From assembly GCA_977017575.1 (NCBI GenBank), contig CDRNVI010000164.1, positions 186,001-250,000 on the forward strand: a stretch of 64,000 bases of DNA, read 5' to 3'. This document shows positions 2,127-48,652 of the stretch, one piece after another. Under the pieces are notes generated by a model. The model was not told the origin of the DNA and made no database searches. It was given only the letters and a program-made list of their open reading frames with translations. How positions within the stretch are numbered: position 1 is the stretch's first letter; every line of letters starts with the position of its first letter. Source of the DNA: Paramoeba atlantica (taxonomy: Eukaryota > Protista > Discosea). The position numbers were made by a program, and so were the translations under genes.

Positions 2127-3197
2127 ATGGATCTGGTAAAGTTCTATTGGAAAGGATCCTTTGGTTACCTTTGTGAAGAGGGACATTCCATCGCTGATGC
2201 TTTTCGAAATCCAAGACGATTTGGAAATGGCGCTGCCATTTGCCAAAACGCGGTTGGTGTTGTGTGTTCCTCTCTGTCTGATCAGGAAGCAGCAGTTTGG
2301 TTTCGACGAGCCGCAGAACGTGGGAATGTCTACGCACAATGGAACTTAGCTTGGATGTATTCTATGGGTGAAGGTGTTGAAAAAGATTCTGAGGAATCGT
2401 TCAAGTGGTTCCAACTCAGCGCGGATGGAGGGTTTTCGCTCGCCCAAAATCATGTCGGGATTCTCTTTGAGGATGGGAAAGAAGGTGTTGCCCAAAGCTT
2501 CGAAAAAGCGGCAGAATATTATCGATTGAGTGCATTACAAGGTGATTCTTATAGTCAAACAAATCTAGGAAAATTGTATGAACTCGGGTTGGGGGTTCCA
2601 CAAGAACTTGATGAAGCGGTAAGATGGCATCGAGCGAGTGTGAAACAAGGAAATCCAGTTGCCCAAAATAATCTTGGACTTGCGTATGAAAGAGGGAGAG
2701 GTGTTGAATTGAATCAAAAGAAAGCATTGTATTGGTACAAAGCGAGCGCAGCTCAAGGTGATTCGTGTGGTCAAGCAAATTTAGGAAGGGCGTATCAAAA
2801 TGGGTGGGTCGATGGTTCTAAAAAGCCACTTGAGGAAGCGTCCAAGTGGTATCGTTTAAGTGCCAAACAAGGAAATTCCTCTGGGCAAGTGAATTTGGGG
2901 ATGATGTATCTGCGTGGATTGGGAATCGCGAAAGATGAACAAGAAGCTCTTAAATTGTTTCGATTAAGTGCTGAGAAAGGAAGCGCAGTTGGGCAATATT
3001 ACCTCGGATTTATGTTAGAGAAAAATGGGGATCACGATGAAGCAAAGAGATATTATCGTTTGAGTGCTGAACAAGGAAATGACCTCGCCAGAGATCGGTT
3101 GGCCGCAGTCTTGAACATCCACCCCAACAAAAACGAGAATGACAATATTCTCCCCCCTCCTGCTCCTTTTATCGACGAGAACATTGATAACAACTAA
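2127..3197 (+). CDS. Sel1-like repeat (SLR) protein, intronless
   Basis: Multiple repeats of A(Q)xNLGxxYxxGxGVxxDxxxAxxWYxxSAxQG. Likely ATG at 2127, in frame with the listed ORF. Divergent from the Ras gene. Confidence 0.9.
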   Translation: MDLVKFYWKGSFGYLCEEGHSIADAFRNPRRFGNGAAICQNAVGVVCSSLSDQEAAVWFRRAAERGNVYAQWNLAWMYSMGEGVEKDSEESFKWFQLSADGGFSLAQNHVGILFEDGKEGVAQSFEKAAEYYRLSALQGDSYSQTNLGKLYELGLGVPQELDEAVRWHRASVKQGNPVAQNNLGLAYERGRGVELNQKKALYWYKASAAQGDSCGQANLGRAYQNGWVDGSKKPLEEASKWYRLSAKQGNSSGQVNLGMMYLRGLGIAKDEQEALKLFRLSAEKGSAVGQYYLGFMLEKNGDHDEAKRYYRLSAEQGNDLARDRLAAVLNIHPNKNENDNILPPPAPFIDENIDNN

Positions 3198-3579
3198 AAA
3201 TAAGAGAGAATCTCCTTTTTTTTGTCAAACTTTGAAGAGCAGAGCAGAGAAAAAAAGAATGTTATGTAAGATGTAAAAAAAAGAGACATTCATGTTTATT
3301 TATTAAATGCTCCTTGTGGGAAAGAAAAATGCCTTTTGATTTTTTGTCCTTTTCACCTTGCTTTCCTTTTCACCACAAAAAGTAAAAACAATAGGACCTT
3401 CTTTTTCTCAAGCTTTTTCTTTCTGAGCTTTTTTCTTTGTGAGATTCTCACTCACTCTTCGGAGCCAGATATGCGCGCCCTTTCTTAGGAAGAAGGAGGA
3501 GGAGGGTTTGGCTTGAAACAGGCGGAAAACATTTGACATTCACAAATAAGATTTCCTCTCAGTCGCAATCGCAAAATTT

Positions 3580-4924
3580 CTATCGATACAATCGATAAAT
3601 ATGAACAGTACTTCGAACATCAACATCACCAGAATCTTCTTCGAACATGACAGGTTTCTTTGTTCGAAAGAGTAATTCAATTTTGAAGTTGAATGGAGGA
3701 TTCACAGCAAGCGTCAAGAATCGGAGGTCTTTTTCTTCATTTTCTGGAATGTGATGAGAGAAAGCAACGATTACCTTTTAATTTAATTTTTGAGGTGAGT
3801 TTAGTGACGATTTCAAAGAATGAAAAGGAGAGAATGAAAAGGAAATAAAACCTCTCCTGAAGGAGAAAGACAATTCTGGCAAGTTGTTAAAAGAGCAGAA
3901 TGTTCGGAGTGATTGAAGACTAAGTCTGCTAAGAGGATGACATCAAAGGGAGAAGAACGAGGAGAGAGAGAAGAAGAAGAAGGAGGAGGTCCATCACCAA
4001 CATCACCAACATCACCAAGACAAGTTGATAAGAGTTCCGATGGATCCTTTCCCCAAATATACCCACACACAGCTACAAAAAGAAACCACAGAGTTAATAT
4101 TGAGAGGATGTGGAGATATATGAAAAAAACTTCAATCAATATATACCGACTCGATTCTGAAGAGAAGAAGGAAGACAATTTTCAACATTCTTTCGAATGT
4201 TCTCCAAAAGTTCTGTGTCAGGATAATCTGAGATCACGGTTGACTTCGCACCACACAATGCAGAGACCTAGAAGAAAAAATTGTTGTCAGAATCAAAGAG
4301 AAAGGGTTCTTGAGAGTTAAAATAAAAGAAATTTTAACCAATGATGGAAGAGCAGAAGCAGCACCAAGCTCAAGAACTCGTTTTCCTGACACATCCAAAT
4401 ATGTTGCACATGATCCACAGGGTCTTTGAATTTTTGAAAGATGAGGCACAAGTTGAGAGTGATCACCTGTTTTTTGTAGAATCGAAAGGGGTTGACCACT
4501 AATCATATCTGTGATTACAATCCCTGTGTTGAAAAAAACCATTGAGAAAATTCGAGAGACCAAGAGAAAAAAAACCGAAAGGAAAAGAGAAAGAGAAAGA
4601 GAAAGAGAAAGAGAAAGAGAAAAAAGACCGGCATTCCAAAGACAATGTCCCCAGAGAGGATGGGAACCTACTAACTGCAGTTTCAATAAAGTACTTTGGT
4701 CTTGTTTTTCTCCTCCAGTTTGTTCTTCGATTTTTGACTCGCCACGAACTTGACATTGATGAGAAGAACGTCGAAATCGATACAACTTCACCGAACCTTC
4801 AGGTGGTTTCTCGTAGAAATCTGATCATTCGTTCCATCAAAACAAAAAAATAACAAGATAAAGAAAGATAAAGACCTTCATCATCAAACATCATCCCACC
4901 CATAACATCGCCATCATCATCCAT
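3580..4924 (-). CDS. Protein N-terminal/lysine methyltransferase, EFM7/NNT1-like (seven-beta-strand, multi-exon)
   Basis: Exon pieces give LVGSHPLWGHCLWNAG, GKRVLELGAASALPSL (SAM motif I), GYIWG, FDVILLADLVFNHSEHSALL, VAFSHH and VMFEEDSGDVDVRSTVH. ATG 4924 (MDDDGDVMGGMMF); TAG 3582-3580. Confidence 0.8.
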
Positions 4925-5129
4925 GATCGTTTGCGAGATCAAACGAAAAAGAGATAAAACGAAAAAGAGAAACACTTTCGCGGACACCATAGAGACGAAG
5001 AGGGACACCGACTTGATCGCCTCCTGTTGTTTGCGTTTTCACCTTGTTTCTTAATTGGGTTTAAGAAAATCACAAGAAATTGAATTGGTTTTTTTGAATG
5101 AATAATAAAAAAACTGGGAGGGATTCGTA

Positions 5130-5157
5130 AGATAGATAGATAGATAGATAGAGATAG
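5130..5157. repeat. (AGAT)n microsatellite
   Basis: agatagatagatagatagatagagatag read directly. Confidence 0.85.
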
Positions 5158-5208
5158 TTTATTTTTTTAATGTACAAGAATTTTTTTTTTTGGCTTCCCA
5201 ATACTTTT

Positions 5209-6228
5209 TCAATATTGGCAAGTCAGGTGGCGGTAGGAATCACCCCATGTTTGCGAGCGAGAAGGAGCCGCTGATGTTAAAGGAAAGAGGGGTGGTTGTT
5301 GAAGAAGTGTTGAGAGGGAGGGAAGAAGGGGTTGAGAAGTTTTGATTGGAGCAAATACTGGTTGGGAAAACGAGTTCGAAAAAGGGTTGTTGTGGAAAGT
5401 TGAATCATTAAGGATTGCAGAGGGAGGAGGGAGTCTGGGGGGAGGGAGAACTTTTTGTTGTTCAAAACAGCGGGTCGACGAGGAAAAGGGAACTGGTGGA
5501 AATAATTGTTGGAGAGGAGGTAACAAAAGGCAAGAAGGAAGAGCAGATCTCTCATTCATCTGAGGAAGAGGTGGGAGAAAGAGTGACTCCCCGCCGTCAC
5601 CAGAAGAACGCTTGAGTTTTTTTGGGGGAGGATGATTTTCTATTTCTGTTGTGAATCCGGTTCCGAGAGGTTGTGAATCAGGACTGATCGATCTTTTGCG
5701 GTTTTTGCATGTCGTCTCGCCCTCCGAAAGATTGATAAATTTTCCACTCTTGACAAGGCCTTTTAACTTCTCGATTGTAAGTTGCCATTCCAAAGAGTCT
5801 TCGTTGTTCTCAATTTTTTTCAGAATCGCAGGCGCCCCTCGTTGACGACGAGTTTTAAACCACTTTTGGACTTGAGGGTATTGAATGGACAATTCTTTCG
5901 CAAGTTGCGCTTTCAAGTAAGAGGTAGGGTATTTTGAGTGATTTTGGAAAACCCACTCAAGCACTCGGACTTGTTCAACAGCGAGGTTCACCCTGCCTTT
6001 GTAACCTCCTCGAAGCTTTCTGTTTCGAATCCACAGCCGAATTTGCTCTGCAGAAAGTCCTGTTGATTGAGACACTTCCAAAAATTTCTTTTTTTTGAGT
6101 TCATGTTTGTCGTCTTCGCAGCTGAGACCATCACTCTCAGCCTCGAGTTCCAAGTAGAGACGTTCAAGGGCTTCTCGTTGGGAAGGGGTATAAGTTGGAG
6201 TCGTATAAGTTTTTGTAATGCTCTTCAT
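5209..6228 (-). CDS. Double-homeodomain transcription factor with Pro/Leu-rich C-terminus, intronless
   Basis: HD1: YTPSQREALERLY...STGLSAEQIRLWIRNRK. HD2: EQVRVLEWVFQNHSKYPT..KAQLAKELSIQYPQVQKWFKTRRQR. Likely ATG at 6228. Confidence 0.8.
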   Translation of the reverse strand: MKSITKTYTTPTYTPSQREALERLYLELEAESDGLSCEDDKHELKKKKFLEVSQSTGLSAEQIRLWIRNRKLRGGYKGRVNLAVEQVRVLEWVFQNHSKYPTSYLKAQLAKELSIQYPQVQKWFKTRRQRGAPAILKKIENNEDSLEWQLTIEKLKGLVKSGKFINLSEGETTCKNRKRSISPDSQPLGTGFTTEIENHPPPKKLKRSSGDGGESLFLPPLPQMNERSALPSCLLLPPLQQLFPPVPFSSSTRCFEQQKVLPPPRLPPPSAILNDSTFHNNPFSNSFSQPVFAPIKTSQPLLPSLSTLLQQPPLFPLTSAAPSRSQTWGDSYRHLTCQY

Positions 6229-6958
6229 GGTCTTTTTTTCAAGAGAAAAGAAAGTGACAATTTGGAACAAAAACCGGAAGAGAACCTCGTTGCGACCCCC
6301 ATGACGAGGAACCGGAACAATCCGTGTTGGTTGCAACGAAGAATGAGGAAAAATCGTTGCCACGTCATCTTCTGCTCCCTTCTGAATTTTCTTTCCTTTT
6401 TTCCTCTGAGTGTAAAACAAATATAAAATATATTTTTAGAAAATTTTGTGGAGTATTTTTGTCCATTCTAAGATTGAGACCTTTTCCTGTTGACCAGAGA
6501 CGAGGAATGGTGGGATGTTCGTGTTTCTTCGTCCCAAAAAAGAACCCCATGATTTTGAGGTGTTTGTTCTTTCGAGGACTCAAAAATTCTAGATTGAAAA
6601 TTCGAATCTTGGTCCTCAACACTTTCGAATTTTTGAAAACCCTGGTAATTAAAAGTGCAAAAGTTTTTCACTTTTGGTTGGGAGAGGGAAACGGGGTGGT
6701 TGCCTTGAAGGTGAACTGTCTTCTTTTCAATCATAAAAAAGACACGTCTTTTGAACAACTTTGTTTTCTTTTCTTTTCAAGAATTTTCAAGAATAATGTT
6801 TTTTTTTTCAAATCATGATTTTCACAGTTTTGTTGTTTTGTTTTTGAAAACTTTGATTGGGCGAGTTCTTTTGAAAAGAACAACACCCTCTTCTTTTGTT
6901 TGTTTTGTCTCAAATTATTTTGAGTCCGAAAAATATTCAGTTCTCAGCTTTTTTTTTT

Positions 6959-7678
6959 TTAACTTTGCAGAGATCTTGATCGTTGTTCAAATGACTTGAC
7001 TTCTTGGACCAAAACATCATAAATCCGATGACAACCTTGTATCCCAAGCTTTAAAACCTTTTCATACGTGTCCAAATCTGCACGATAATCCATTTGCATC
7101 ATTATCACTTTATCTGACTTGGGTAAAATAGCGACAGGCATGTCAACTCCTCGAGCAGAATCTTCCAAATAATTCAAATCAAGCAAAGGAGTATTGTCAA
7201 TACAACCCGCTGCACAAGCAACCACAAAATCTTTCATTGGGATTCCTGCAACGACACAAGCCAGGGTAATTGCATTGATGCTTGCACAACGAGTTCCTCC
7301 ATCTGCTTGAAGAACTTGAACATAAATATTGATCATGGAACCAGGAAATTGAGTGACTAAGATTGCTTCTTCAAAAGTTTGTTTGATGGCAAGAGAGATT
7401 TCCAGATTTCTTCGATTTCCTTTTGTTCTTTGTTTTCTTTCACCAGTACTAAATGGAGCCATACTGTACTCGCAAGTTACAACAGCGCGATCGTGAAGTC
7501 CTTTTCCTCGTTTTGCTTCTTGTGGTCCGTACACAGCAGCGAGGACTTTGGTGTTTCCTTGTTCATAATAAGCGGAACCATGAGCATGTGAGAGAACTCC
7601 AACACGACAACGAATTCTTCGGAGTTCATTTGGTCGACGACCATCTAATCGAAGACCTTCTGGGGAAATGTACTCCAT
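6959..7678 (-). CDS. RRP41: Exosome complex component RRP41 (RNase PH-like)
   Basis: MEYISPEGLRLDGRRPNELR, GSAYYEQGNTKVLAAVYGP, YSMAPFSTGERK and QVLQADGGTRCASINA are diagnostic RRP41/EXOSC4 motifs. Single intact ORF. Confidence 0.97.
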   Translation of the reverse strand: MEYISPEGLRLDGRRPNELRRIRCRVGVLSHAHGSAYYEQGNTKVLAAVYGPQEAKRGKGLHDRAVVTCEYSMAPFSTGERKQRTKGNRRNLEISLAIKQTFEEAILVTQFPGSMINIYVQVLQADGGTRCASINAITLACVVAGIPMKDFVVACAAGCIDNTPLLDLNYLEDSARGVDMPVAILPKSDKVIMMQMDYRADLDTYEKVLKLGIQGCHRIYDVLVQEVKSFEQRSRSLQS

Positions 7679-8074: not shown

Positions 8075-11000
8075 ATGTTTCTTCTCCCAGAATTTGTGTC
8101 TAAATTTCCCTAAAATTTTTCCCTTTTCCCTTTTCTCTGCCAAAAATCTGTTCCTCTCCAGGGTTTATGGCGCTGGAATTGCAGTTACTTTGTCCGTGGG
8201 TGTCTACTATTTCTTCTTAAGGTCAACTGCTGCGGGGCAAATCACAAAAAACGATGAAGAACAAAAAGATCAAAACGAACAACAATCTCGTGAGATAGAT
8301 TTTGGAAGTGCATCTGCGAAAGAAATTGTTCCCTCAAAAGTTGATTTGAAGAAAAAGGAGGAAGGAGTGAGAAAGAAAAAAGAGGAGGAAGAGAAGAAGA
8401 AGAAAGAAGAGGAAGAGAAAAAGAAAAAAGAGGAGGAAGAGAATAAGAAAAGAGAAGAAGAGAAAAAGAAAAAAGCAGAAGAAGAGAAAAAGAAAAAGGA
8501 TGAAGAGGCAAAGAAAAAGAAAGCAGAAGAAGCGAGGAAGAAGAAGGAAGAGGAAGAGAAAAAGAAAAGAGAAGAAGAGGAAAAGAAAAGAAGGGAAGAA
8601 GAGGTGAGGAAAAAGAAAGCTGCGGAAGAAGAAGCAAGAAAGAAGAAAGAAGAAGAAAAGAAGAAAAGAGAAGATGAAGAGAAGAAAGAAGAAGAAAGGA
8701 AGAGGAAGGAAGAGGTGGCGAGGTTAAAGAAAGAAGAAGAAGAGAGGAAGGGGAAAGAAGAAGAAAGAAAGAGAAGAGAGGAAGAAGAGAAGAGAGAGAG
8801 AGAAGAGAGAAAGAAGAGGGAGGAAGAAGAGAGATTGAAGAGAGAAGAGGAAGAGAGAAAGAAGAGGGAAGAAGAAGAGAAGAAGAAAAAAGAGGAGGAG
8901 GAGAGGTTGAGAAAGGAAGAGGAAGAAAGATTAAGAAAAGAGAAAGAAGAGAAACAGAAAAAGGTGGAAGAAGAAGAGAGAAAGAGAAAAGAAGAAGAGG
9001 AGGAGGAGAGGCTTAAAAAAGAGAAAGAGGAAGAAGAGAGATTGAAGAAAGAAGAAGAAGAGAGGTTGAGAAAAGAAGAAGAGGAAAGACAGAAGAAAGA
9101 AGAAGAAGAGAGACTCAAGAGGGAAGAAGAAGAGAGACAAAGAAAGGAAGAAGAGGAGAGAAAGAAAAGAGAGGAAGAAGAGAGACTCCAAAAAGAAGAA
9201 GAAGAGAGACTCAAGAAGGAAGAAGAGGAAAGACAGAGGAAAGAGGAAGAAGAGAGATTGAAAAAAGAAGAAGAAGAGAGATTGAAAAAAGAAGAAGAAG
9301 AGAGATTGAAAAAAGAGGAAGAAGAGCGATTGAAAAAAGAAGAGGAGGAAAGACAAAAGAAAGAAGAGGAAGAAAGACTGAGAAAAGAAGAAGAGGAGAG
9401 ATTGAAAAAAGAGGAAGAGGAGAGACAAAAGAAAGAAGAAGAAGAGAGACTCAAAAAAGAAGAAGAAGAGAGGCAAAGAAAAGAAGAGGAAGAGAGACAA
9501 AAGAAAGAAGAAGAAGAGAGACTCAAAAAAGAAGAAGAAGAGAGATTGAAAAAAGAAGAGGAAGAAAGACAACAGAGAGAAGAGGAAGAGAGACTCAAAA
9601 AAGAAGAAGAAGAGAGACTCAAAAGGGAAGAAGAGGAGAGACAGAAGAGAGAAGAGGAAGAGAAGCAAAAAGAAGAGAAAGAAGAAGAGAAAGAAGAAGA
9701 GGGGAAGAAAGAATTAAAAGAAGGACAATATTTGTGCGCGAAATGCAACGAAGTTAACGAACAAGAGGACGTTTTCTGTGCGGAATGTGGCCATAAACGA
9801 GAGGAGAAAGAAGAAGAGAAAGAAGAAGAGAAGAAGGAAGAGAAACAAGAAGAAGATGGGATATATATTTGTAGTAAGTGTGGAGAAAAGAATCCAATCG
9901 ATGAAGGAGTCTTCTGTTCAGAATGTGGCCACAAAAACGAAATTGGAAAAAAGAAAGAAATTCCGATCCTTATTCTCACAGAAATTCCGTAATTCTCTTT
10001 ATTTTTTTACCCTCTCTCTCCTTCTCCCTTTCTCTCTTTTCCTTTCTCGAGCTCCTTTCCCTTTATTCTTGATCTCTCAATTTTCAACTCTCTTTTTTCT
10101 CTTTTAACTTTTCCCCTTTCACAGAAAAACAGAGAAAATTTTGACTCACCAAACAAGAGAAAGAGCAAGAACAGCAACCAGAAAACCATCACAATGGCCA
10201 CTTCCAATCGATATTTCTGTTACAGATTTGCAGTATGAGCCCAAAAAGGTATTTTTTTTTTGGAATTTTTTGGAATTTTTTGGAATTTTATTGTTTTGTT
10301 TTATTTGTTTTTTTGTAGTCGTTTATTCTAATTGTTTGTTGTGATTGATTGATTGTTGTTCTTGTTGGATCTTATTGTGGTAATCTTGGCTGTTTATTCT
10401 TCTCCATAACTCATTTTTTTTTGTTCAAAAAGGCTCCTCAATCAGCCGTTGGACGTCCAGGGATGGGAGGAATTAACCCTGGTCTTGCTCTTGCAGGTCT
10501 CCGAAAAACAGACTTTTCAAAATCAGAGGCGAGTTTTTTAGGTTTTCTCTCTCTCCTTGTTTTCTTTTTAAATTCTTTTGACTCACTTTTTGGTTTTCTT
10601 TCGTAGAATCGGGCAGCAGTTCCAAACCTGCACCTGCACCTGAGGGTTCAATTTTCTTTTGTCAGACCATTTTCTTTTTTTCTTTTTTTTTCTTAAAAAA
10701 TCTTTTCATAGAGGGTTCATTGGAGTCCAAACGAGCCGCTATTGCTGCAGGTAAGAGTTTTGCACAAAAAAAGAGAATGAGATTGAAGATTGTGAGCTGA
10801 CTTGAAAAAATAGTTGGGGGATTAGTGCGAAAAGATACAATGTCTTCATTCAATTTGGATCCCTTAGCTGCTTTGCGAGCGAAAAAGAAGAGTTTCCCTC
10901 CTCCCAAACGTTTGTATTTGTTTTTTTCTTTCTGTCAGAGAGGATGTTTTAATGTCTCTCTCGTTCTTAAACTTATTATTTTTTGTTTTATTTAGTTGAG

Positions 11001-12251
11001 GGCGAGGATGGTGAAGGAGAAGGAGGTTCTTTTTTTTTTTCTCTCCAAAAAAACAGAACCTTTGTCTCACCCTTTCTAAACTAGAGCCAGAAAAACCAGC
11101 AATTGATCCATTGGCAGCACTGAAAGCACGAAAAGCTGCTCGTTCTCCATCTCCAAACCCACCAGGAAGCGCCCAGGAAGAAGGTTTGAATTTTCACATG
11201 ATCACCAATGAAAAAGAAACCATTATCCTTAGCTCACAAATCCAATAAAATAGAACCAGAAAAACCAGCACTTGATCCATTGGCAGCACTGAAAGCCCGA
11301 AAAGCTGCTCGTTCTCCTTCTCCAAACCCGCCCCAGGAAGAAGGTTTGATTTTTCAGCAAATGAAAATCTGTGATCACTTCCTCACAAACCAAATACAGA
11401 ACCAGAAAAACCAGTAATTGATCCATTGGCAGCACTGAAAGCTCGAAAAGTCATTCGTTCTCAAACACCCAACCCACCAGGGACTGTCCAGGAAGAAGGT
11501 TTGATTTTTCACACAACAAATGGAAAAAAATCTGTGATCACTTCCTCACAAACCAAATACAGAACCAGAAAAATCAACACTTGATCCATTGGCAGCACTG
11601 AAAGCTCGAAAGGCCACCCGTTCTCAAACACCCAACCCACCAGAAAGTGCAAAATCAGGTTTTTCTCTTTCCTTCTAAAATTAAAACCACATAAGATAAT
11701 AAAAATCAAAGAGATAACAAACAATATTACCATCACCAAAACTCAATCATCAACAACAGAAGGATTAATTCGAACCAGAGTTCGAGCGGATACTCTGAAT
11801 TCACAACCCCTTGCCACTCGAGATCCTTTGGCTGCTTTGCGAGCAAAGAAGAAAGCAGCTGCTGAATCGCCTTCTTCGACTCTAAGAGTTGATTCTGACG
11901 AACAAGAAGAGGGTTTTGAATTTTTTTTTAAATCCAGATTCTTTTTCTTTTCGTTGACAAATCAATACACAGAACCTGCAAAACTTGACCCACTTGCTGC
12001 TCTCAAAGCAAAAAAGAGAGCTGGGACAGCTTCTCCAGCTCCAGCCAGCCCAGCCTCCCCAAATTTAATACAAGGTTCGTTTTTTTTCAAATCTCAATAT
12101 TTAATTAATATTTTTACTTGTCAAATTTTTGATTTTTAATTGAACTTTCTTAGAAGGAGCCTCACCCAAGCTAGATCCACTCGCTGCCTTGAAAGCAAAA
12201 AGAAAACAAGAAGGGAAAACAAGTACAGGTGCTCTGCGAATTGAGATGTGA
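8075..12251 (+). CDS. Paralog A: N-terminal TM anchor, ER/K charged single-alpha-helix tract, 2 zinc ribbons, CPI motif, LRKT motif, 8 DPLAAL[KR]A[KR] repeats (multi-exon)
   Basis: Proposed exon 1 at 8075-8097 splices (intron 8098-8161) to VYGAGIAVTLSVGVYYFFL. Long exon to 9988 with EEEERLKK repeats and CxxC..CxxC ribbons. LTHQTRERAR at 10141. Small exons carry DPLAALKARK. Ends GALRIEM* (TGA 12249-12251). The start exon is inferred. Confidence 0.75.
11085..11660 (+). repeat. Four tandem exon+intron units (about 150-170 bp) each encoding EPEK..DPLAALKARK..PNPP
   Basis: Both exons (aaccagaaaaaccagca..ttgatccattggcagcactgaaagc) and introns (gtttgatttttca..tgtgatcacttcctcacaaaccaaatacag) are homologous between units. 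Confidence 0.9.
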
Positions 12252-12436: not shown

Positions 12437-12518
12437 AACTGAAAAATTTGTTTTTTTGGTTTTTCTCTCTTTCTCTTTTTCTCTTTTTTTCTGTTCTGTG
12501 CTTTCCTTTTGTGTCTTG

Positions 12519-15500
12519 ATGTCTTCGCGAGAGACAAGTGAGACCTTGATCTCCGCGGTAAAGAGACATGACGTTGAACTAGTGAAAAAAGCACTTCTTC
12601 AACAAAACGCAGATGTGAATTATCAACCACAAAAGGTTACAACACCTTGGGGGATGTTTTTGGGATCACAATCGCATGAAGACAAACGTGATTGGTCTCC
12701 TTTGATGGAAGCAGTGACAAACAATTATGTTGATTTGGTTGAGTTGTTGTTTAATATGAAAGCGGATGTGAATTTGGAAGATAGTAAAGGGAATACTGCG
12801 CTTCATTTAGCTTGTGCGTATGGGAGAGATCAGATTACGACTCTTTTGTTTGAAAAAGAAGCGAATACAGTTGCCCAAAACCATCGAGGGCAAACTCCTC
12901 TTCATCTTGCAGCAGCTCACTCTCTCCCATGTACAAAACTTCTTCTTTTATCAGGTGTAGATCCCAAAACGCAATGCCATGAAGGATTGTCCCCTCTCCA
13001 TGAAGCATGCAAAGAAAATAATGTTGATATTTTGTGGATGTTGTTGTTGGCTGGGGGAGATATAGAACAAAGAGATAAGAATGGCGCAACTCCTGTTTTT
13101 TATGCTGCTTCTTTTGGGGCAACTCGGTGTTATGATATGTTGGTTGAACAAGGCGCTGATGTTAATGTTCCTACTTATGATGGCCAGACTTGTCTTCATG
13201 CCAGGTTTTTTTTTTTTTTTGTGTTTGTTTCTTTTGAAAAATGAGTTGTTATTTTTTTGAGAAACTTGGTTTTTTTTTTGTGATTAAAAAATGATTTTTT
13301 TGTTTTGTTTTTAGTATTCTGAACAAAGATAATGCTATTCTTTTCCGGCTCCTGGCTCGAGATAATGCAGCTGTTGCTGTGGAGAATCAACAAAAGCTTA
13401 CTCCTCTCCATCTTGCTGCTTCTCTTGGAAAGGTTCTTCTTCTCTTTTCAGTTTTTTCCCTCCCTTTTTTCTCAAGAGTTTTTCTAGGGAAGTTGTGCCT
13501 CTCTCTTGATCACAAAAGAAGCCTCTGTGGATGCGCAGGTACTTTTACTTTCTGTTTCTTTTCTAAACTTCCCTTTTTTTTTCTTTCTTTTCTTTCTCTT
13601 TCTTCATTTTCTTTTCCTTACCTTATCTTATCCCCCTCCTCACAGACCCACCTCGGAAATACCCCTCTTCATCTCGCAGTCCTCCGTCTTGGAACGACCC
13701 TCTCAAAAGAAGAAGAATTAAAAGCTATCTCGTGTATTGAAATCTTGTTAGACAAAGGAGCAGGATGGAAAATGCAAAATCATGAGGGGCTTACTCCTGT
13801 ACATATGGCCTGTTTGGTGGGGAATTCTATGGCGTTAAAATCGTTGTTAAATCATGCGCATCGAGTTGTTAGAACCCAGAAGAGGCAGGTTGTAAATGTG
13901 GGGAGTGTGGTTGTGCAGTGTCAACATAGTGTTTGTGGAAAGAAGAAGGTGTCTGGGTGGGATAAGGTGAGAGGGATGTTGAGGGGGGAGATGAACTCAG
14001 GTTTGATGGATTTTTTAAATTAAAAATTTAATTCTCCTTTTTTCCCTCCTTTCTCACCTTTTTTAATTAATTAGCGAATGTTGTTCGAACTGGTGTTTCT
14101 TGGGCCTTCAGCTCTGAATCTACTCTTTTGTCCTCTCCCTCTTCTCCTTCTTCATCCTCCACTAATTCTTCCTCTTCCTCTTCCACTCCCTCTTCCTCTT
14201 CCTCTTCCTCTTCCTCTTCTTCTTCCCTTATTTCTGCTTTATCTTCCTCAACACCTGCTCTATGTGCGGTCAAAGATCTTAAATCAGAAGAAAAAACCCC
14301 ACCTGGTTCTCCTCAAGTTCCAGTTCGAAGTCTCTCTTCTCTCCCGGCCGCGACATTTTCTCATCACTCTCGAGAGAAAGATCTTCCTACTGGCGGACCA
14401 GCGGCGGTACTAAAGAGACAATTCTCTCCTCAAAATCTTTTGAGGAAGACAAATTCAACTGACTACGCTTTTAATCCCCAAGAATCAACATCAACCAACT
14501 CGATGAAATCGGCGCTCCCTCCCCCTCTTGCAGCTCCTCCTGTCCCCGGCCCTCGTAAATCTGTGCCGCGTATCTTCCCCCGTTCTGGGAGTGGAGTGCC
14601 TCCTTCTGTCGCAAGGGATAATCTTTATCCTGAGTTGGAAAAAGATGGGAAGAGTGAGGATTCTCCTTTACATTTGGCGGTGATTTCAGGGGATTATTCC
14701 ACTGTTGAGATGATATTGCCTGTAGTGTGTCCCAGGTATTTTTTCCATTTATTGTGTAATTTCGCCCACTTTTTTTTGCATTGGTTTTTTTAACCTTTTT
14801 TTAGACAGAAAATGGAATTGGAGAATCGCCCAATTGACAAGTATGATGAAGGAGGTAAGTTTTTTCTTTTTTCCTTTCCTTTCTCCCCTTCTTCTCACCC
14901 TCCACAAAAAGGATTTACTCCTCTCTGTCTCGCCGCCTCATTAGGGCATCACAAGTTGATTGACTTTTTGTTAAAAAATGAGGCAGACCCAAACAAACCA
15001 GATTCAAATGGGAATACTCCTCTTCATTTAGCTGCAAGAAACCCTTCTTCTGAACACGCACTGGTTTATTTTTCATTTTTGTCACCCCTCTTTTGGTCAG
15101 AAGAAGGGTCGTTATTTTTCCTTTCCCCTCCTTTTTTTCCTCCTCCAATTCACTCTTTTTAAATCTAGTGTGTTCAAGAACTTCTTGCAAGTGGAGCGGA
15201 ACTTGACTCACAAGACAAACAAGGAAATACCCCTCTCCATGTCGCTTGTGAATCCGGAAGTCTCTCTTCAATCAATGTTTTAATCGAGAACGAAGCATCA
15301 ATTGATTCTTTAAATCAATATGGGCACAGTGCAATTGAAATAGCATGTTGGTATGGGTTTGAGAAAATATTGCAAACATTAATTCAATTTCGAGTGAAAA
15401 AAGCTACAACTCCTTCTCTTCCACCTCCACCATTTCCTTCTTCCATTTCTGCGTTACACATTGCGGCCTTTCGAGGGCATACAAGATGTTTGGCTTTGTT

Positions 15501-42032: not shown

Positions 42033-45000
42033 TTACATATCAATTCTTAAGACTGCCCTCTTCTTTCCACTGTCAGCTCCACCTTGGTTCTTCTTTTTTG
42101 CTTTCAGAGCAGCCAGTGGGTCTTTCTTTTTTTCTTCTTCTCCATTTGGTGATTCTTCTATATTCAAAAAAAGGAAAAAGGAAATCAATTATTATCAATT
42201 CTTTTGGGAATTATTATCAATTCTGAATTTGTTTCCATTTAAAAAGAGAGAAAACCTTGCGCAGGAGCCGCAGAACCCCCAGCTTTCTTTTTTGCTTTCA
42301 ATGAAGCAAGAGGATCTTTCTTTGGAGGTGCACCAACAGTTGCCGCTCTCATTCTTTGCTCATCAATTTCTGATTCTCCTGTCTCATCACCTGTTTTGCA
42401 TGTTTTGTTAACAGAGTTTGAGTGGAAAGAAATCAAATATCAAAGATCAAAGTACCTTTTGCAGCTCGACGAGCTTTGAGGGCAGCCAATGGATCTGGTT
42501 TGTTTGCTGTTTCTTCAACAACTTCTGAAAAAAGGACAAATTATTCAAAACTTCTCGAAAATTAAGAAAAGAGAGAAAAACCTTCTGGTACAACCAGTTC
42601 ATAACTCGATTTCGTTGCTTTTCTTGCTTTAAGAGCTGCCAATGGATCTGGTTTCTTCGTTGTTTCTTCAACAACTTCTGAAAAAAGGACAAATTATTCA
42701 AAACTTCTCGCAAATTAAGAAAGAGAGAAAAACCTTCTGGTACAACCAGTTCATAACTCGATTTCGTTGCTTTTCTTGCTTTAAGAGCTGCCAATGGATC
42801 TGGTTTCTTTGGTTCTTCTTCTTCCACTTGATAGAAAAGTTAGATAAAGAAGCAAATCTTGAAAAAAAAAAGAAAAAGACATACCAACTGTGTCCATTGA
42901 TTCATCAGAATCTGGTGCCTCTGATTTCGTTGCTTTTCTTGCTTTGAGGGCTGCCAAAGGGTCAGGTTTCTTGGTTTCTTCAACAATTTCTAAAAAAAAA
43001 AGATTGAGACACGAAAGGAGAAAGAAGAGAAAGCTCAAAAGCTCAACCTTCTGAATCTTCCGATGTTTGTGTGCCCTCAGAGTCAGGCGATGCAGCTATT
43101 ATTCAATTTTATTTGACGAAACAATTCAAAAAGAAAAGTTTGAATCTCAAAAACAAACCTTTTGTCGCTTTTCGTGCTCTAAGTGCAGCAAGTGGGTCAA
43201 CTTTTGGAGCCTCTTCTGAAAACAACAAAATTAGCATCAAGGCTTACGAAAAAAACAAACAGAAAGGGAAAGGGAACCAGAATTCTCCGCCTCTACATCA
43301 AGAACAGGGGCAGAAGCTAAAATAAAAGAACAGTTAAATGAAAAGAAATCAAGAAAAGAGAAAAGAAGACGAAAAAGAACCGAATTTTGCAGATTTTCGA
43401 GCTTTAAGAGTAGCCAGAGGATCAATTTTTGGTGCTTCTGAGTCTTTTACACACAGTTAGAAAAAGAACACATGGAAATCAAAACAAAAGAAAAGAAAAA
43501 CCTTCTTCAGAATCACCTGTACTTGGAGAATCTGACAATTCAAAGAGAAAGGAAGAGTTAGAGCAGGAATAAATTTCCAAAGAAAGAGAAAGAAAGAAAT
43601 CAAAACCTGCTTGAGCTGCTTTTCGAGCTTTGAGAGCAGCAAGGGGATTGGGTTTTGGTGCATCTTCTTCAGAAACCTCACTTGGGGCATCTAGAATGAA
43701 AAAAAAAAGAGATTAGATTAAATAAAAAGTATTGAATCCCTCAATCTCTCTCTTCTTTTTTCTTTTGAAAGAGAAAATGTCACCGCCATCTCCTTCAACT
43801 TTTGCCTTGAGCGCAGCCATGAGGGGGTTTGGTGCAGCTCCCTAAAGAGAAATCGTAAATATCAAAATTCTAATTTCAACTTTTCTCCAACAAACACAAC
43901 AGGACAATCTACTCTTTTTTCCCACATTTGCAATCAAAAGTACCTTGGTTGGACGGCGGAGTGCCTAATCAGACGAAAAATGAGTCATTTTATTTAAACA
44001 CATCAAAAAGAAAAAAGAAAAAGAAAAACAAACGCCAGCAGAAAGAACAGCTGCTCCAATTCCAGCCATTCCCATTCCAGCCATTCCCAATGCTTTTGCT
44101 GCCGACGTATTTAAGGGGTCTTTCAACTATTAAAATAAAATAACATAAGAAAAGAAAAAGAAAAAAGGAGTTTTTTTAATTCATTTGATAATAAAAAGAG
44201 GAGAAAAAAAGAGAGAAAGGTACTGATCGAGGAGAGCAAGATGGTTCTGTAACAGCAATAGATACAGCAGGTCGAGCACGTCGGACTGCATTCTTCCTTG
44301 CTCGGCTATGAAAACAAATTATTTTTAAGAGAGAAGGGAGAGGAAGAGGGAATGAAAAGAAAAAAGAAGAGAGAGAGAAAAAGAGGATGTGGATAGCAAA
44401 AAACCTTGGGCGATTTTTCGTAAAGTGGGACAAATGAGAGGACAATTTCCTGCCTTGTGAATCAATCGCCAAACTCAACACAGACGCTTTTTTTTCTTCC
44501 TTTTCTTCTCTTTTATGGCCACATTCTGCACAGAAAACGTCCTCTTGTTCGTTAATTTCGTTACATTTCGCACACAAATATTGTCCTTCTTTTAATTCTT
44601 TCTCTTCTCTTTTATGACCACATTCCGCACAGAAAACGTCCTCTTGTTCGTTAATTTCGTTACATTTCACACACAAATATTGTCCTTCTTTTAATTCTTT
44701 TTTCCCCTCTTCTTCTTTCTCTTCTTCTTTTTCTTGTTTCTCTTCCTCTTTCTCTTCTTCTTTCTCCTCTTGTTTATGGCCACATTCCGCACAGAAAACG
44801 TCCTCTGCTTCGTTAATTTCGTTGCATTTCGCACACAAATATTGTCCTTCTTTTAATTCTTTCTTCCCCTCTTCTTCTTTCTCTTCTTCTTTCTCTTCTT
44901 TTTGCTTCTCTTCCTCCTCTTCTTTCTCTTCCTTTTTCTCTTCCTCGATCTCTTGCACTTCTTTCTCCTCTTTCTTCAGTCTCTCTTCTTCCTCTTCTTT

Positions 45001-48000
45001 CTTCAATCTCTCTTCCTCTTCTTTCTTCTGTTTCTCTTCCTCCTCTTTCTTCAATCTCTCTTCTTCCTCTTCTTTCTTCTGTTTCTCTTCCTCTTCTTTC
45101 TTCAATCTCTCTTCCTCCTCTTTCTTCTGTCTCTCTTCCTCCTCTTTCTTCAATCTCTCTTCCTCTTCTTTCTTCTGTTTCTCTTCCTCTTCTTTCTTCA
45201 ATCTCTCTTCCTCCTCTTTCTTCAATCTCTCTTCCTCCTCTTTCTTCAATCTCTCTTCCTCCTCTTTCTTCAATCTCTCTTCCTCCTCTTTCTTCTGTCT
45301 CTCTTCCTCCTCTTTCTTCAATCTCTCTTCTTCTTCTTCTTTCTTTTGTCTCTCTTCCTCCTCTTTCTTCAGTCTTTCCTCTTCCTCTTTTCTTAATCTT
45401 TCCTCCTCTTCCTTCCTCAACCTTTCTTCTTCTTCCTTCCTCAACCTTTCTTCTTCCTCCTTCCTCAATCTCTCTTCTTCTTCCTTCCTTAATCTCTCTT
45501 CCTCTTCCTTCCTCAATCTTTCCTCCTCTTCCTTCCTCAATCTCTCTTCTTCTTCCTTCCTCAACCTTTCTTCTTCCTCCTTCCTCAACCTCTCCTCCTC
45601 TTCCTTCCTCAATCTCTCTTCCTCTTCCTTCCTCAATCTTTCCTCCTCTTCCTTTCTCAGTCTCTCTTCTTCTTCCTTTCTCAACCTTTCCTCCTCTTCC
45701 TTCCTCAATCTCTCTTCTTCCTCCTTCCTCAACCTCTCCTCCTCTTCCTTCCTCAATCTCTCTTCTTCTTCCTTCTTCAGTCGCTCTTCTTCCTCCTTCC
45801 TCAACCTCTCCTCCTCTTCTTTCTTCAGTCGCTCTTCTTCCTCCTTCCTCAACCTTTCTTCCTCCTCCTTCTTCAATCTCTCTTCCTCCTCCTTTCTCAG
45901 CCTCTCCTCCTCTTCCTTCCTCAATCTCTCCTCTTCTTCTTTTCTCTTTCTCTCTTCTTCCTCCTTCTTCAGTCGCTCTTCTTCCTCCTTCCTCAATCTC
46001 TCTTCCTCTTCTTCCTTTTTCAACCTCTCCTCTTCTTCCTTCCTCAACCTCTCCTCCTCCTCCTTCTTCAATCTCTCCTCTTCTTCCTTTCTCTTCCTCT
46101 CCTCCTCTTCCTTCCTCAATCTCTCTTCCTCTTCTTTCCTCAATCTTTCTTCTTCTTCCTTTCTCTTCCTCTCTTCCTCTTCCTTCCTCAATCTTTCTTC
46201 TTCTTCTTTTCTCTTTCTCTCTTCTTCTTCCTTCCTCAACCTCTCCTCCTCTTCTTTCTTCAGTCGCTCTTCTTCCTCCTTCCTCAATCTCTCTTCTTCT
46301 TCCTTCTTCAGTCGCTCTTCTTCCTCCTTCCTCAACCTTTCCTCCTCTTCTTTCTTCAGTCGCTCTTCTTCCTCCTTCCTTAATCTCTCTTCTTCTTCCT
46401 TCTTCAACCTCTCTTCCTCTTCTTTCCTCAACCTCTCCTCCTCTTCTTTCTTCAGTCGCTCTTCTTCTTCCTTCCTCAACCTCTCCTCCTCCTCCTTCTT
46501 CAACCTCTCTTCTTCCTCTTTTCTCAACCTCTCCTCTTCTTCTTTTCTCTTTCTCTCTTCTTCTTCCTTCTTCAACCTCTCTTCCTCCTCCTTCCTCAAC
46601 TTCTCTTCTTCTTCTTCTTTCTTCAATCTCTCTTCTTCTTCCTTCCTCAACTTCTCTTTCTCTTCCTTTTTCTTCCTCTCTTCCTCTTCCTTCCTCAATC
46701 TCTCTTCCTCCTCTTCCTTCCTCTTTTTTTCTTCTTCCTCTTTTCTCAATCGTTCTTCTTCCTCTTTTTTCTTTCTCTCTTCCTCTTCTTTCTTCAATCT
46801 CTCTTCTTCTTCTTTTTGGAGTCTCTCTTCTTCCTCTTTCTTCTGTTTTTCCTCTTTTTCCTTCTTGAGTTTCTCTTCTTCCTTCCTCTTTTTTTCTTCT
46901 TCCTCTTTTTTCAATCGCTCTTCTTCCTCTTTTCTCAATCGCTCTTCTTCCTCTTTTTTCTTTCTCTTTTCCTCTTCTTTCTTCAACTTCTCTTCTTCTT
47001 CTTTCTTCAATCTCTCTTCTTCTTCTTTCTTCTGTTTTTCCTCTTTTTCCTTCTTGAGTCTCTCTTCTTCTTTTTGGAGTCTCTCTTCTTCCTCTTTTTC
47101 CTTCTTGAGTCTCTCTTCTTCTTCTCTCTTCTGTCTTTCCTCTTCTTCTTTTCGCACCCTCTCTTCTTCTTCTTTCTTCAATCTCTCTTCTTCTTCTTTT
47201 TTCTTTTTCTCTTCTTCTTCTTTTCTCACCCTCTCTTCTTCCTCTTTTTTCAATCTTTCCTCCTCTTCTTTTCTCTTTCTCTCTTCTTCTACAAGATCAA
47301 CCACAATCTCGACTTCAATTCCTCTTTCCCCTTCGGCCTTCTCTTCTTTTTTTTTCAAGCGAGCTTCTTCTTCAAATAGCCCCCATCCTCCCTTTTCACC
47401 CTCTTTCTTTTTCTCCTCTTTCTCCTGCCCTTCAACTTTTTTGTTTTTTTCTTTTTTCTTCGCTTCAGCCTCTTCTTCGAAAAGTCCCCACCCTCCCCTC
47501 TCACTCTCCCTCTTTTCTTCTTTTTCCTCTTTTTCCTCTTTTTTCTCTTTATCTTTTTTCTCTTTCTCCTCTTTCATTACTTTGTCCATTAACTCTTTTG
47601 CTTCGCGTTCTCCTTCTTCCTCGAACTTCTTGAGCTCTTCTTTTTTGATTACTCTTTCTTCTTCTCTTTTTGGTCCAAAAGAAGAAGAGATTTTGGGAAT
47701 TGGAAGTGCAGCTGGAAGAAAAAAAAAGTAAGTTATTAAAAATTTCAACACAAAAAAGGATTTTGTTTTGAAAACAAACACCAAACAGAGACAAACAGAC
47801 AACCATACAAATTAATCGACCTTGAGGATGTAAACCCCAACAAACATCTCTCAAAATGATCTTATTTCGAAAAAACAGAGTAGGAAAAAATAGCAACAAA
47901 ATCCACACAATCCAAAGAAAACAACTCTCACTTTACAATAATTATCGAGTAAACTTTTTTTAACAAACACCTCTTTCGACCAAAGAATATTTTTTTCAGG

Positions 48001-48652
48001 ATATCTTAAATGTTTAAAAGAGAACAGAACAGAAAATGAACTTCTTCGAAAAAGATGGAGACAGACGGTACCAAAAAACGAACAAACTTTCCAGAAAAAC
48101 AGATCAAAAAAGAAAAAGAAAGAAACCTTTTGCCATTCCAATCGGAAAAAAACAACATAAAGAACCAAAATATTTCCCAAACAGAACACTTTCAAATAGA
48201 ACAAGAACAAGAATCCACAAATAATAAATAAAATCCAACAAAAATAAAAAAACCTTTTTCTTTACATTCATGAAGAACAACATCTTTAACAAGCATTTCT
48301 TCTTTACAAACAGAACATTTTACAGGAAAATCGTCAATTGGCCCCAATTCGTCCAGTGGATCCGATCTTGGCGGTTTGACCTCCCCACCTTGAAAAAAAA
48401 AGAGAGACGAATGAGTTCCGGTTTTGTGTGGAAAGAGAGAAAGAGAGGAAAGAAAAGAAAGAACAAAAAGAGAAAAGAGAAAAGAGAAAAGAGAAAAAGA
48501 AAAAGAAAAAGAAGACCTCTTCCTCCTCCTCTTCCACCAGCCCCTCTTCCTCTCCCAGCCCCTCTTCCCCTTCCGGCCCCTCCCCTCTCATTCCGACTCC
48601 TATCATCCCTCCTCTGCTGTGGTGGTGACTCTTTACTTTGTGACTGTCCCAT
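42033..48652 (-). CDS. Paralog B: putative N-myristoyl start, very long ER/K single-alpha-helix tract, 3 zinc ribbons, CPI motif, about 10 DPLAALKA[RK] repeats
   Basis: ATG 48652 gives MGQSQSKES. Giant exon about 47715-44405 of (EEEERL[RK]K)n plus YLC.KCNE.NE.EDVFCAECGHK x3. LSHFTKNRP; small DPLAALK exons; ends AVLRIDM* (TAA 42035-42033). Linkage of the 5' exons to the long exon is inferred. Confidence 0.72.

Follow-up and report, generated by a model that had tools for sequence, protein, structure and literature searches.

The window analysed here is a stretch of 64,000 nucleotides from Paramoeba atlantica (assembly GCA_977017575.1, contig CDRNVI010000164.1, positions 186,001 to 250,000 of the forward strand), and all coordinates are those of the window unless another contig is named. 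It is eukaryotic in character, with short GT-AG introns, and contains two paralogous genes, here called A and B, whose products combine a very long charged helix and zinc ribbons with a tail that carries a segment resembling the CPI (capping protein interaction) motif and an array of DPLAAL repeats (Table 1). Chaining of canonical splice sites gave for gene A a model of 14 exons with GT-AG introns (8162-12251, plus strand), which form one open frame of 999 amino acids (aa) plus the stop codon. The elements that the original prediction had listed for gene A were all located where it had placed them and in the order it had given, including the eight DPLAAL repeats and the LRIEM end.

Table 1. 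Coordinates of the genes and sequence elements discussed in the text
Feature	Position	Strand	Remarks
RNase PH/RRP41-like open reading frame (ORF)	6959-7678	-	single exon
Gene A, putative first coding exon	8075-8097	+	ATG, MFLLPEF + 2 nt, then a 64-nt GT..AG intron; from sequence only
Gene A, exons 1-7	8162-9988, 10125-10248, 10433-10541, 10607-10645, 10712-10750, 10814-10909, 10996-11025	+	
Gene A, exons 8-14	11085-11183, 11254-11343, 11400-11498, 11563-11658, 11760-11912, 11973-12074, 12154-12251	+	
Gene A, large exon	8162-9988	+	ORF; hydrophobic helix, ER/K helix, two zinc ribbons; donor 9988 joined to 10125 in X5 contig
Gene A, hydrophobic 19-aa segment	8163-8219	+	VYGAGIAVTLSVGVYYFFL; candidate signal-anchor/transmembrane helix; Kyte-Doolittle mean 1.66
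Gene A, ER/K-type charged helix	8316-9746	+	477 aa; 45% E, 26% K, 14% R
Gene A, zinc ribbon 1	9735-9788	+	C-x2-C-x10-C-x2-C; Pfam Zn_Ribbon_1, DZR; RanBP2-like spacing C-x2-C-x3-N-x6-C-x2-C
Gene A, zinc ribbon 2	9870-9926	+	C-x2-C-x11-C-x2-C; Pfam Zn_ribbon_3, DZR
Gene A, hydrophobic patch	9960-9986	+	IPILILTEI, upstream of the CPI-like motif; counterparts SVLSLAID (B), SLLSLATQ (L004)
Gene A, CPI-like motif	10141-10188	+	LTHQTRERARTATRKP; regex scan; spliced in frame
Gene A, family-specific element	10189-10248	+	SQWPLPIDISVTDLQYEPKK; most conserved A-lineage piece; P0008 counterpart TQWPLPYDISVSE
Gene A, Gly/Met-rich segment ending LRKT	10460-10510	+	GMGGINPGLALAGLRKT; counterparts in L003/P0007, P0008, B
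Gene A, second Ala/Gly-rich L-x-RK-x-T segment	10732-10839	+	RAAIAAVGGLVRKDT; spans intron; aligns to B GAAVLSAGALRRPT
Gene A, eight DPLAAL[KR]A[KR][KR] units	10858-12203	+	one per phase-1 exon; introns between confirmed by spliced contigs
Gene A, DPLAAL unit starts	10858, 11105, 11274, 11420, 11583, 11822, 11987, 12174	+	
Gene A, C-terminus	12231-12251	+	ALRIEM + stop; B ends VLRIDM
Ankyrin-repeat gene	12456-14023	+	with introns
Paralog B	42033-48652	-	same order of parts as A; ends VLRIDM
Paralog B, CPI-splitting intron	44306-44404	-	multiple of three, no stop codon
Paralog B, putative first exon	48517-48652	-	MGQSQSK, then RGG/GRG tract
VPS13-like gene	49309-54597	+	first 1,762 codons intron-free

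Transcript support for gene A came from contigs of two public runs, X5 and X1, which skip each of the introns from 9988/10125 to 12074/12154, with GT..AG ends. The joints seen directly were 9988/10125, 10541/10607, 10750/10814, 10909/10996, 11025/11085, 11183/11254, 11343/11400, 11498/11563, 11658/11760, 11912/11973 and 12074/12154. The joint 10248/10433 appears as the equivalent 10241/10426, owing to a shared CAAAAAG, and 10645/10712 was derived arithmetically from contig record 21. The evidence for an RNA origin of these contigs is that they lack the introns and have exact GT..AG joints (the RNA label of the runs is otherwise a guess); unspliced gene A DNA is present in runs X2 and X4. We conclude that: i) gene A is a real, expressed multi-exon gene, and ii) transcripts include its CPI exon in the frame of the model, on which the original prediction depended. 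The sequenced strains X1, X2 and X5 differ from the window by an in-frame AAAGAA insertion after position 11911, at the end of the exon that stops at 11912, and X4 has a variant form of it.

Because no Met lies in frame in the large exon of gene A, the gene must start in an exon further upstream. Enumeration of phase-compatible ATG/donor pairs gave many candidates, among which 8075-8097 alone has a short pyrimidine-rich intron. Near the N-terminus a helix was predicted by AlphaFold2 (AF2) at residues 5-24, on the hydrophobic segment. The end of this putative transmembrane (TM) helix, VGVYYFFLRS, loosely resembles a soluble motif that is repeated in relatives, which calls for caution in reading it as a TM helix. 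In one relative, the L003 contig described below (positions 3000-5618), where the likeness is to VPAFYLA..KK, the motif SIRASNVPAFYLA(L/Q)TAKKA occurs in seven copies; the relatives P0008 and P0004 have LVYYMT(V/L)KQPRL or LLYYSTLKRP, two copies each. The likeness may be due to chance, or the 'TM' segment may be kin of that motif.

In the charged region that follows, E/K/R make up 85%, E-to-K/R i+4 pairs number 0.35 per residue, and hydrophobic residues (Leu) are spaced by 8 rather than 7, hence no heptad. AF2 predicted a near-continuous helix over residues 66-517, with a predicted local distance difference test (pLDDT) score of 60-77. The marks of a single alpha-helix (SAH), namely at least ~75% E/K/R, opposite charges from i to i+4, no heptad and a predicted continuous helix, were all found here. 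Composition and AF2 thus fit the SAH-like helix claimed earlier, although its length is 477 aa and not ~430 aa. The two CxxC ribbons that had been read from the sequence were also recovered with Pfam matches, the Zn_Ribbon_1 score being 24.9 bits against a cut-off of 25.

Downstream of the CPI-like site, the tail of gene A continues with the element SQWPLPxDISVxxLQYEPKK. Its QWPLPxDISV part was considered as a CARMIL-specific interaction (CSI) motif and rejected, because the CSI consensus RxDEGxEEFFxKR (PMC5491179) is unlike it. The following GLALAGLRKT ends at 10510. Its LRKT had been taken for a WH2-like element, a reading that is weak: the LRKT exon gave no Pfam match to WH2 (PF02205) at E up to 10, nor did the relatives P0004 and P0008 at E up to 1, and the LRKT is preceded by a Gly/Met/Pro-rich stretch, not by an amphipathic helix. 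Across the family, a Gly/Met-rich stretch is followed by L[RK][KRS]T, which we regard as a lead rather than as WH2 membership. The DPLAAL units look like D-P-capped amphipathic basic helices of 10-12 residues with Pro/Ser/Glu linkers. Actin as their ligand is a guess from context, that is, from the CPI motif, from the LKKT-polyproline end of P0004 and from the precedent of Legionella MavH.

As had been claimed, paralog B repeats the order of motifs of gene A, and the gene model bears this out. Its parts are a putative MGQSQSK start, an RGG tract and a CxxC..HxC knuckle, which are encoded by two phase-compatible upstream exons, followed by an ER/K helix of 835 aa and three zinc ribbons. The tail then carries the CPI motif LSHFTKNRP|S RARKNAVRRARP (L at 44433), split by an intron between its P and S, a Gly/Met-rich ALRRPTK segment and 10 DPLAAL-type units. 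The MGxxxSK start is kept in a second relative, the L004 contig, as MGNNESK (L004:2589-2735). The PROSITE pattern for N-myristoylation is G-{EDRKHPFYW}-x2-[STAGCN]-{P}, which MGQSQSK and MGNNESK both fit. Pfam searches with B gave Zn_Ribbon_1 (49.1 bits), DZR (44.5) and RanBP (30.8).

At the CPI site of B, the spliced region aligns gaplessly to the L004 ORF, with 20/37 residues identical, which validates the intron, since L004 has none there. Retention of this intron would add ~33 hydrophobic residues and turn Ser at position 10 into Arg. The DNA of the ribbons is 88-91% identical between A and B. The similar stretch includes flanking E-rich DNA (9623-9861 versus 44487-44942), and the rest of the genes is not alignable. 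In the DNA comparison only the DPLAAL cores were shared outside the ribbons, so the gene pair is a mosaic. Together with the absence of the ribbons from a second species (see below), their similarity suggests that the paralogs are ancient and that gene conversion or a domain transfer has recently taken place between them.

To find relatives, 1.84 billion representative proteins were searched with a profile of the repeat, built from 18 repeat exons. Only 10 proteins were returned at E up to 0.001, mostly fragments from metagenomes and metatranscriptomes, one of them from Paramoeba aestuarina, so that the homolog search which had been proposed did uncover a small protist family with this tail. 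The tail exons had no Pfam match and the DPLAAL repeat profile no PDB match, a literature search for DPLAAL strings found nothing relevant, and an ESM Atlas search gave no match. The claim that no described protein has this architecture is supported for the tail, which is without a Pfam family, a PDB relative or a paper. A word search with the B ORF (ribbons and CPI region) was swamped by E/K words and gave no result; when the tail of P0008 and the CPI exon of L003 were used in the same way, nothing came up beyond the queries and P0004. Two scans of metagenome DNA for the pattern DPLAAL[KR]AR yielded 404 and 369 matches, none of which passed tblastn; the query was probably too short or of too low complexity.

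Two of these proteins are encoded on the contigs L003 and L004, which belong to one ENA assembly of a second, clearly diverged species, in which the N-terminus of VPS13 is 39-67% identical to that encoded in the window. The product of L004 starts MGNNESK and continues with a CxxC knuckle and EEEERLKK repeats; after the CPI segment come a segment rich in Gly/Met and four repeats, and it ends VLRLG. Because it has the same divergent VPS13 neighbour as B, the same ER/K repeats and the MGxxxSK start, we consider it the ortholog of B. In the A-type L003, an exon ending PRRSPSQWPLPQDISVGELQYEPRK is followed by GMGAMPAGGFSLRKT and by an exon VRRDTMSAQPLAAKDPLAALRAKKK that matches in layout the exon of gene A starting at 11760; L003 has a VLRLG end and lacks the EEEERLKK helix. 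Since orthologs of both types are present in the second species, the A/B duplication is older than the species split. The zinc ribbons are missing from both orthologs and the EEEERLKK helix from L003, so neither is family-defining.

The same tail is borne on differing N-terminal parts in L003, L004, P0004 and P0008. P0004 joins it to ankyrin repeats and ends WMSRLKKT, then PPPPP. P0008 is a transcript of 65% GC with the tail on a different N-terminal part, and its contig is frameshifted (L001:3100-3465), such that RPVGCSPRT in the called protein is DPLAALRARK in the other frame. The number of repeats in this gene is thus four, and its end is ..TAPGDNR instead of VLRLG. Elsewhere the C-terminal end is kept as ALRIEM in A (12231-12248), VLRIDM in B (42036-42053), and VLRLG in L003 (~7180-7198), L004 (~6430-6448) and P0010 of Paramoeba aestuarina; that of P0006 is VLRLGL. 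From these comparisons, the tail is a conserved module of a small, undescribed protist family. It runs from a hydrophobic patch through the CPI-type motif, a patch of the form [D/S]I[S/T/A]V, an LR[KRS]T segment rich in Gly/Met and the tandem DPLAAL[KR]A[KR]K helices to the C-terminal [AV]LR[IL]x.

The published CPI consensus is LxHxTxxRPK(6x)P, with seven fixed residues (PMC10381072). The site in L004, LTHTTLSRPKPQRKNIP, has all seven; B (LSHFTKNRPS..) has 5/7; and A (LTHQTRERAR....RKP) has 4/7, its L, H, T and R matching. P0008 (LAPLTRSRGK.....RRP) keeps L, T, R and K. In the six-frame translation of the window, L.H.T..R occurs twice, both times at the homologous A/B site, and with [PA] added 0.1 matches are expected by chance. 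Across ~198,000 six-frame positions (the window and four loci) it occurs only at the homologous sites of A, B and L004, and the strict 7/7 pattern once, in L004. The chance of that strict consensus is ~1e-9 per position, yet it stands at the homologous site. We take this position to be decisive for the CPI reading: a perfect consensus found at the same place in an ortholog.

CPI peptides of solved structures were pulled from the PDB with a short probe of the published consensus, namely CARMIL1 (3AA0_C, LEHFTKLRPKRNKKQQPTQ) and CD2AP (3AA6_C, LLHLTANRPKMPGRRLPGR), and scored against the window. The B site was the top match to CARMIL1 in all six frames (39, next best 25), sharing 7/9 residues with that peptide, and the top 10-mer for CD2AP (34 versus 29). 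The A site scored 18-19. The basic residues T-[KR]-x-R are kept as TRER in A, TKNR in B, TRSR in P0008 and TRQR in L003, and at position 10 A has R where B has S. Mutation of K987/R989 in CARMIL1 abolishes capping protein binding, and in MavH R73/K75 are the basic residues needed for binding (PMC10381072); the family T-[KR]-x-R would correspond to CARMIL1 K987/R989. By sequence, L004 would belong to the CPI class, and B and A would be imperfect members of it. We consider it likely that the B lineage binds capping protein, and give gene A itself a chance just short of even. The CPI interpretation is thus partly supported, and it is stronger at the family level than in gene A alone: the gene A site is homologous to one with the complete consensus and is itself degenerate, and the motif scan singled out the A/B site in the window while HMMER gave no CPI match.

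Several observations weigh against a CPI-motif membrane adaptor. In gene A, Pro at position 9 of the consensus is Ala, Lys at position 10 is Arg, and the final proline lies at +16 and not at +17. Its match to the solved peptides is by itself not significant, since ~3,000 equally good ones are expected per 10 million residues; for B, the exact score distributions predict 0.2-0.6 such matches in 10 million residues, which is borderline proteome-wide. When the PDB was searched by HMMER with the CPI segments of A, B and L004 and with a profile of A+B, no CPI chains were returned, only chance matches (an integrase, YfcG and a streptococcal surface protein), and no similarity to Pfam CARMIL_C was detected, HMMER being ill-suited to motifs of 10-17 residues. 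P0008 has Pro in place of His and Gly in place of Pro at position 9, and L003 has no clear LxH. In the CPI exon of L003 the best donor and acceptor disagree in phase, so that its N-terminal residues are approximate. The best-conserved piece of the A lineage is SQWPLPxDISVxxLQYEPKK, outside the CPI core. The zinc ribbons, as described above, are not shared by the second-species orthologs. At the N-terminus, the hydrophobic segment is a plausible candidate TM helix with a borderline Kyte-Doolittle value, and the start exon is putative, the unconfirmed ATG at 8075 being the only attractive candidate.

Part of this could be explained if an ancestral CPI motif was kept in the B lineage and decayed in A, where the protein would serve as a scaffold or tether for another client, held through SQWPLPxDISVxxLQYEPKK, LRKT and the repeats. 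The degenerate sites of A, P0008 and L003 and the score of A against CARMIL1 (18) favour this, as does the DNA comparison of A with L003, in which the sole alignable stretch is the QWPLP..YEPKK half of the exon (78% over 76 nt). We nevertheless find decay in A on the doubtful side, since L, T, [KR]-x-R, the basic run and the proline persist at the same spacing in A and P0008, and since a far weaker match, the 3/7 of Samd14, still binds capping protein (PMC9282853). The degenerate core of A may mean a weak affinity and a reliance on the adjacent SQWPLPxDISV. It is decidedly improbable, in our estimate, that the CPI likeness is coincidental throughout the family, the basic segment being, e.g., a localisation or phosphorylation site in a charged, repeat-rich structural or nucleic acid-associated factor. 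Such a factor would suit the RGG tract and RanBP2-type zinc fingers of B and the Ala/Lys-rich repeats, chance LxHxTxxRA strings do occur (as in YfcG), and the profile searches linked it to none of the CPI families. A coincidence would have to place the strict consensus exactly at the homologous site in L004, and to account for the residues that B has in common with the CARMIL1 peptide. Moreover, the fingers are lacking from both second-species orthologs and, on inspection, have acidic residues where RNA- or ubiquitin-binding ones stand, and the conserved myristoylation-type start of B argues for a membrane location.

The tail could also be primarily an actin assembly device, with LRKT and DPLAAL as compressed WH2-like sites for actin monomers, as in a tandem nucleator or elongator, and the CPI motif in an accessory role, of which MavH is an example. 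That effector binds membranes and has both a CPI motif and a WH2-like helix (PMC10381072), the family conserves the L[RK][KRS]T element, P0004 ends in LKKT and polyproline, and the units are short D-P-capped amphipathic helices in 4-11 copies. We hold this to be very improbable, because neither WH2 nor the PDB was matched, the helix is too short, the usual helix-linker-LKKT spacing is lacking, and Gly, Met and Pro precede the LRKT. A related and rather improbable proposal is that the conserved tail is a new actin assembly module, which would capture capping protein while its repeat array binds several actin subunits or another cortical polymer. Mounted on ER/K rods of 70-125 nm with a TM or myristate anchor, it would determine at what place, with respect to the membrane, capping or freeing of barbed ends occurs. 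Our preferred reading, with a probability of about 0.5, is that gene A encodes a CPI-motif membrane adaptor of ~1,000 aa with a probable N-terminal membrane helix, an ER/K spacer, two C4 ribbons and a disordered tail.

An adaptor of this kind can be compared with the CPI-motif proteins CARMIL, CD2AP/CIN85, CKIP-1, CapZIP, WASHCAP/FAM21, twinfilin and the fungal Bsp1/Aim21, with which it shares a short CPI-type motif placed in a disordered region, the proteins being membrane-associated and in other respects unrelated. It has no sequence relation to them outside the motif, and its binding is predicted from sequence. The anchor would be a candidate TM helix (A) or a myristoylation-type start (B) instead of a PH or SH3 domain, and an ER/K helix of 70-125 nm and new follow-on elements (QWPLPxDISV, Gly/Met-LRKT and the DPLAAL repeats) set it apart. 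The PH, leucine-rich repeat and dimerisation domains of the CARMIL family were not found by Pfam, and the sequence after the CPI site is unlike the CSI motif RxDEGxEEFFxKR (PMC5491179). Legionella MavH (PMC10381072), a small disordered-rich protein, likewise has a membrane-binding part and a CPI motif, together with a short actin-binding helix of WH2-like type. It differs in that it is a bacterial effector, binds PI(3)P through a domain of its own and has its one WH2-like helix on the N-terminal side of the CPI motif, whereas the candidate actin-type motifs in the Paramoeba proteins are C-terminal, repeated and read from sequence. The WASHCAP/FAM21 tail resembles that of gene A as a long disordered, multivalent tail with one CPI motif and many short linear repeats, but its acidic LFa repeats bind retromer; gene A has basic D-P-capped helices and no WASH-binding head. 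The ER/K region resembles the SAH domains of myosin VI/X, caldesmon and MAP-type proteins in that E/K/R make up ~85% of it, salt-bridge pairs from i to i+4 are dense, a heptad seam is lacking and the helix is predicted to be continuous. With 477 aa in A and 835 aa in B its length is exceptional, and it lies between a putative membrane anchor and a motif-rich tail.

The other genes observed near A and B are given in Table 1. The VPS13-like gene and B are divergent neighbours, as are their counterparts in L004.

For the membrane adaptor we infer membrane insertion, capping protein binding, a fixed-distance 'ruler' and a ligand of the repeats. The ER/K single alpha-helix of gene A would span ~70 nm, and the CPI segment would bind the stalk of the heterodimeric capping protein, recruiting or allosterically modulating it at the far end of the membrane-anchored rod. 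The DPLAAL array would provide multivalent binding of a second partner, for which actin is the leading guess. CPI-motif proteins are thought to decide the site of capping protein action near membranes. To our knowledge, those described are nearly all animal or fungal, with the addition of CARMIL in amoebae. If the proposal is true, a lineage-specific family extends the CPI principle to marine amoebae, and in its proteins a very long rigid helix connects the CPI motif with an anchor of lipid or TM type, with a repeat array not described before coming next. The orthologs and paralogs would then be a ready-made set of CPI affinity variants (7/7, 5/7, 4/7 and histidine-less), and the spacers of 477 and 835 aa, in paralogs of one cell, would act as a natural 'ruler' for membrane distance in the control of capping.

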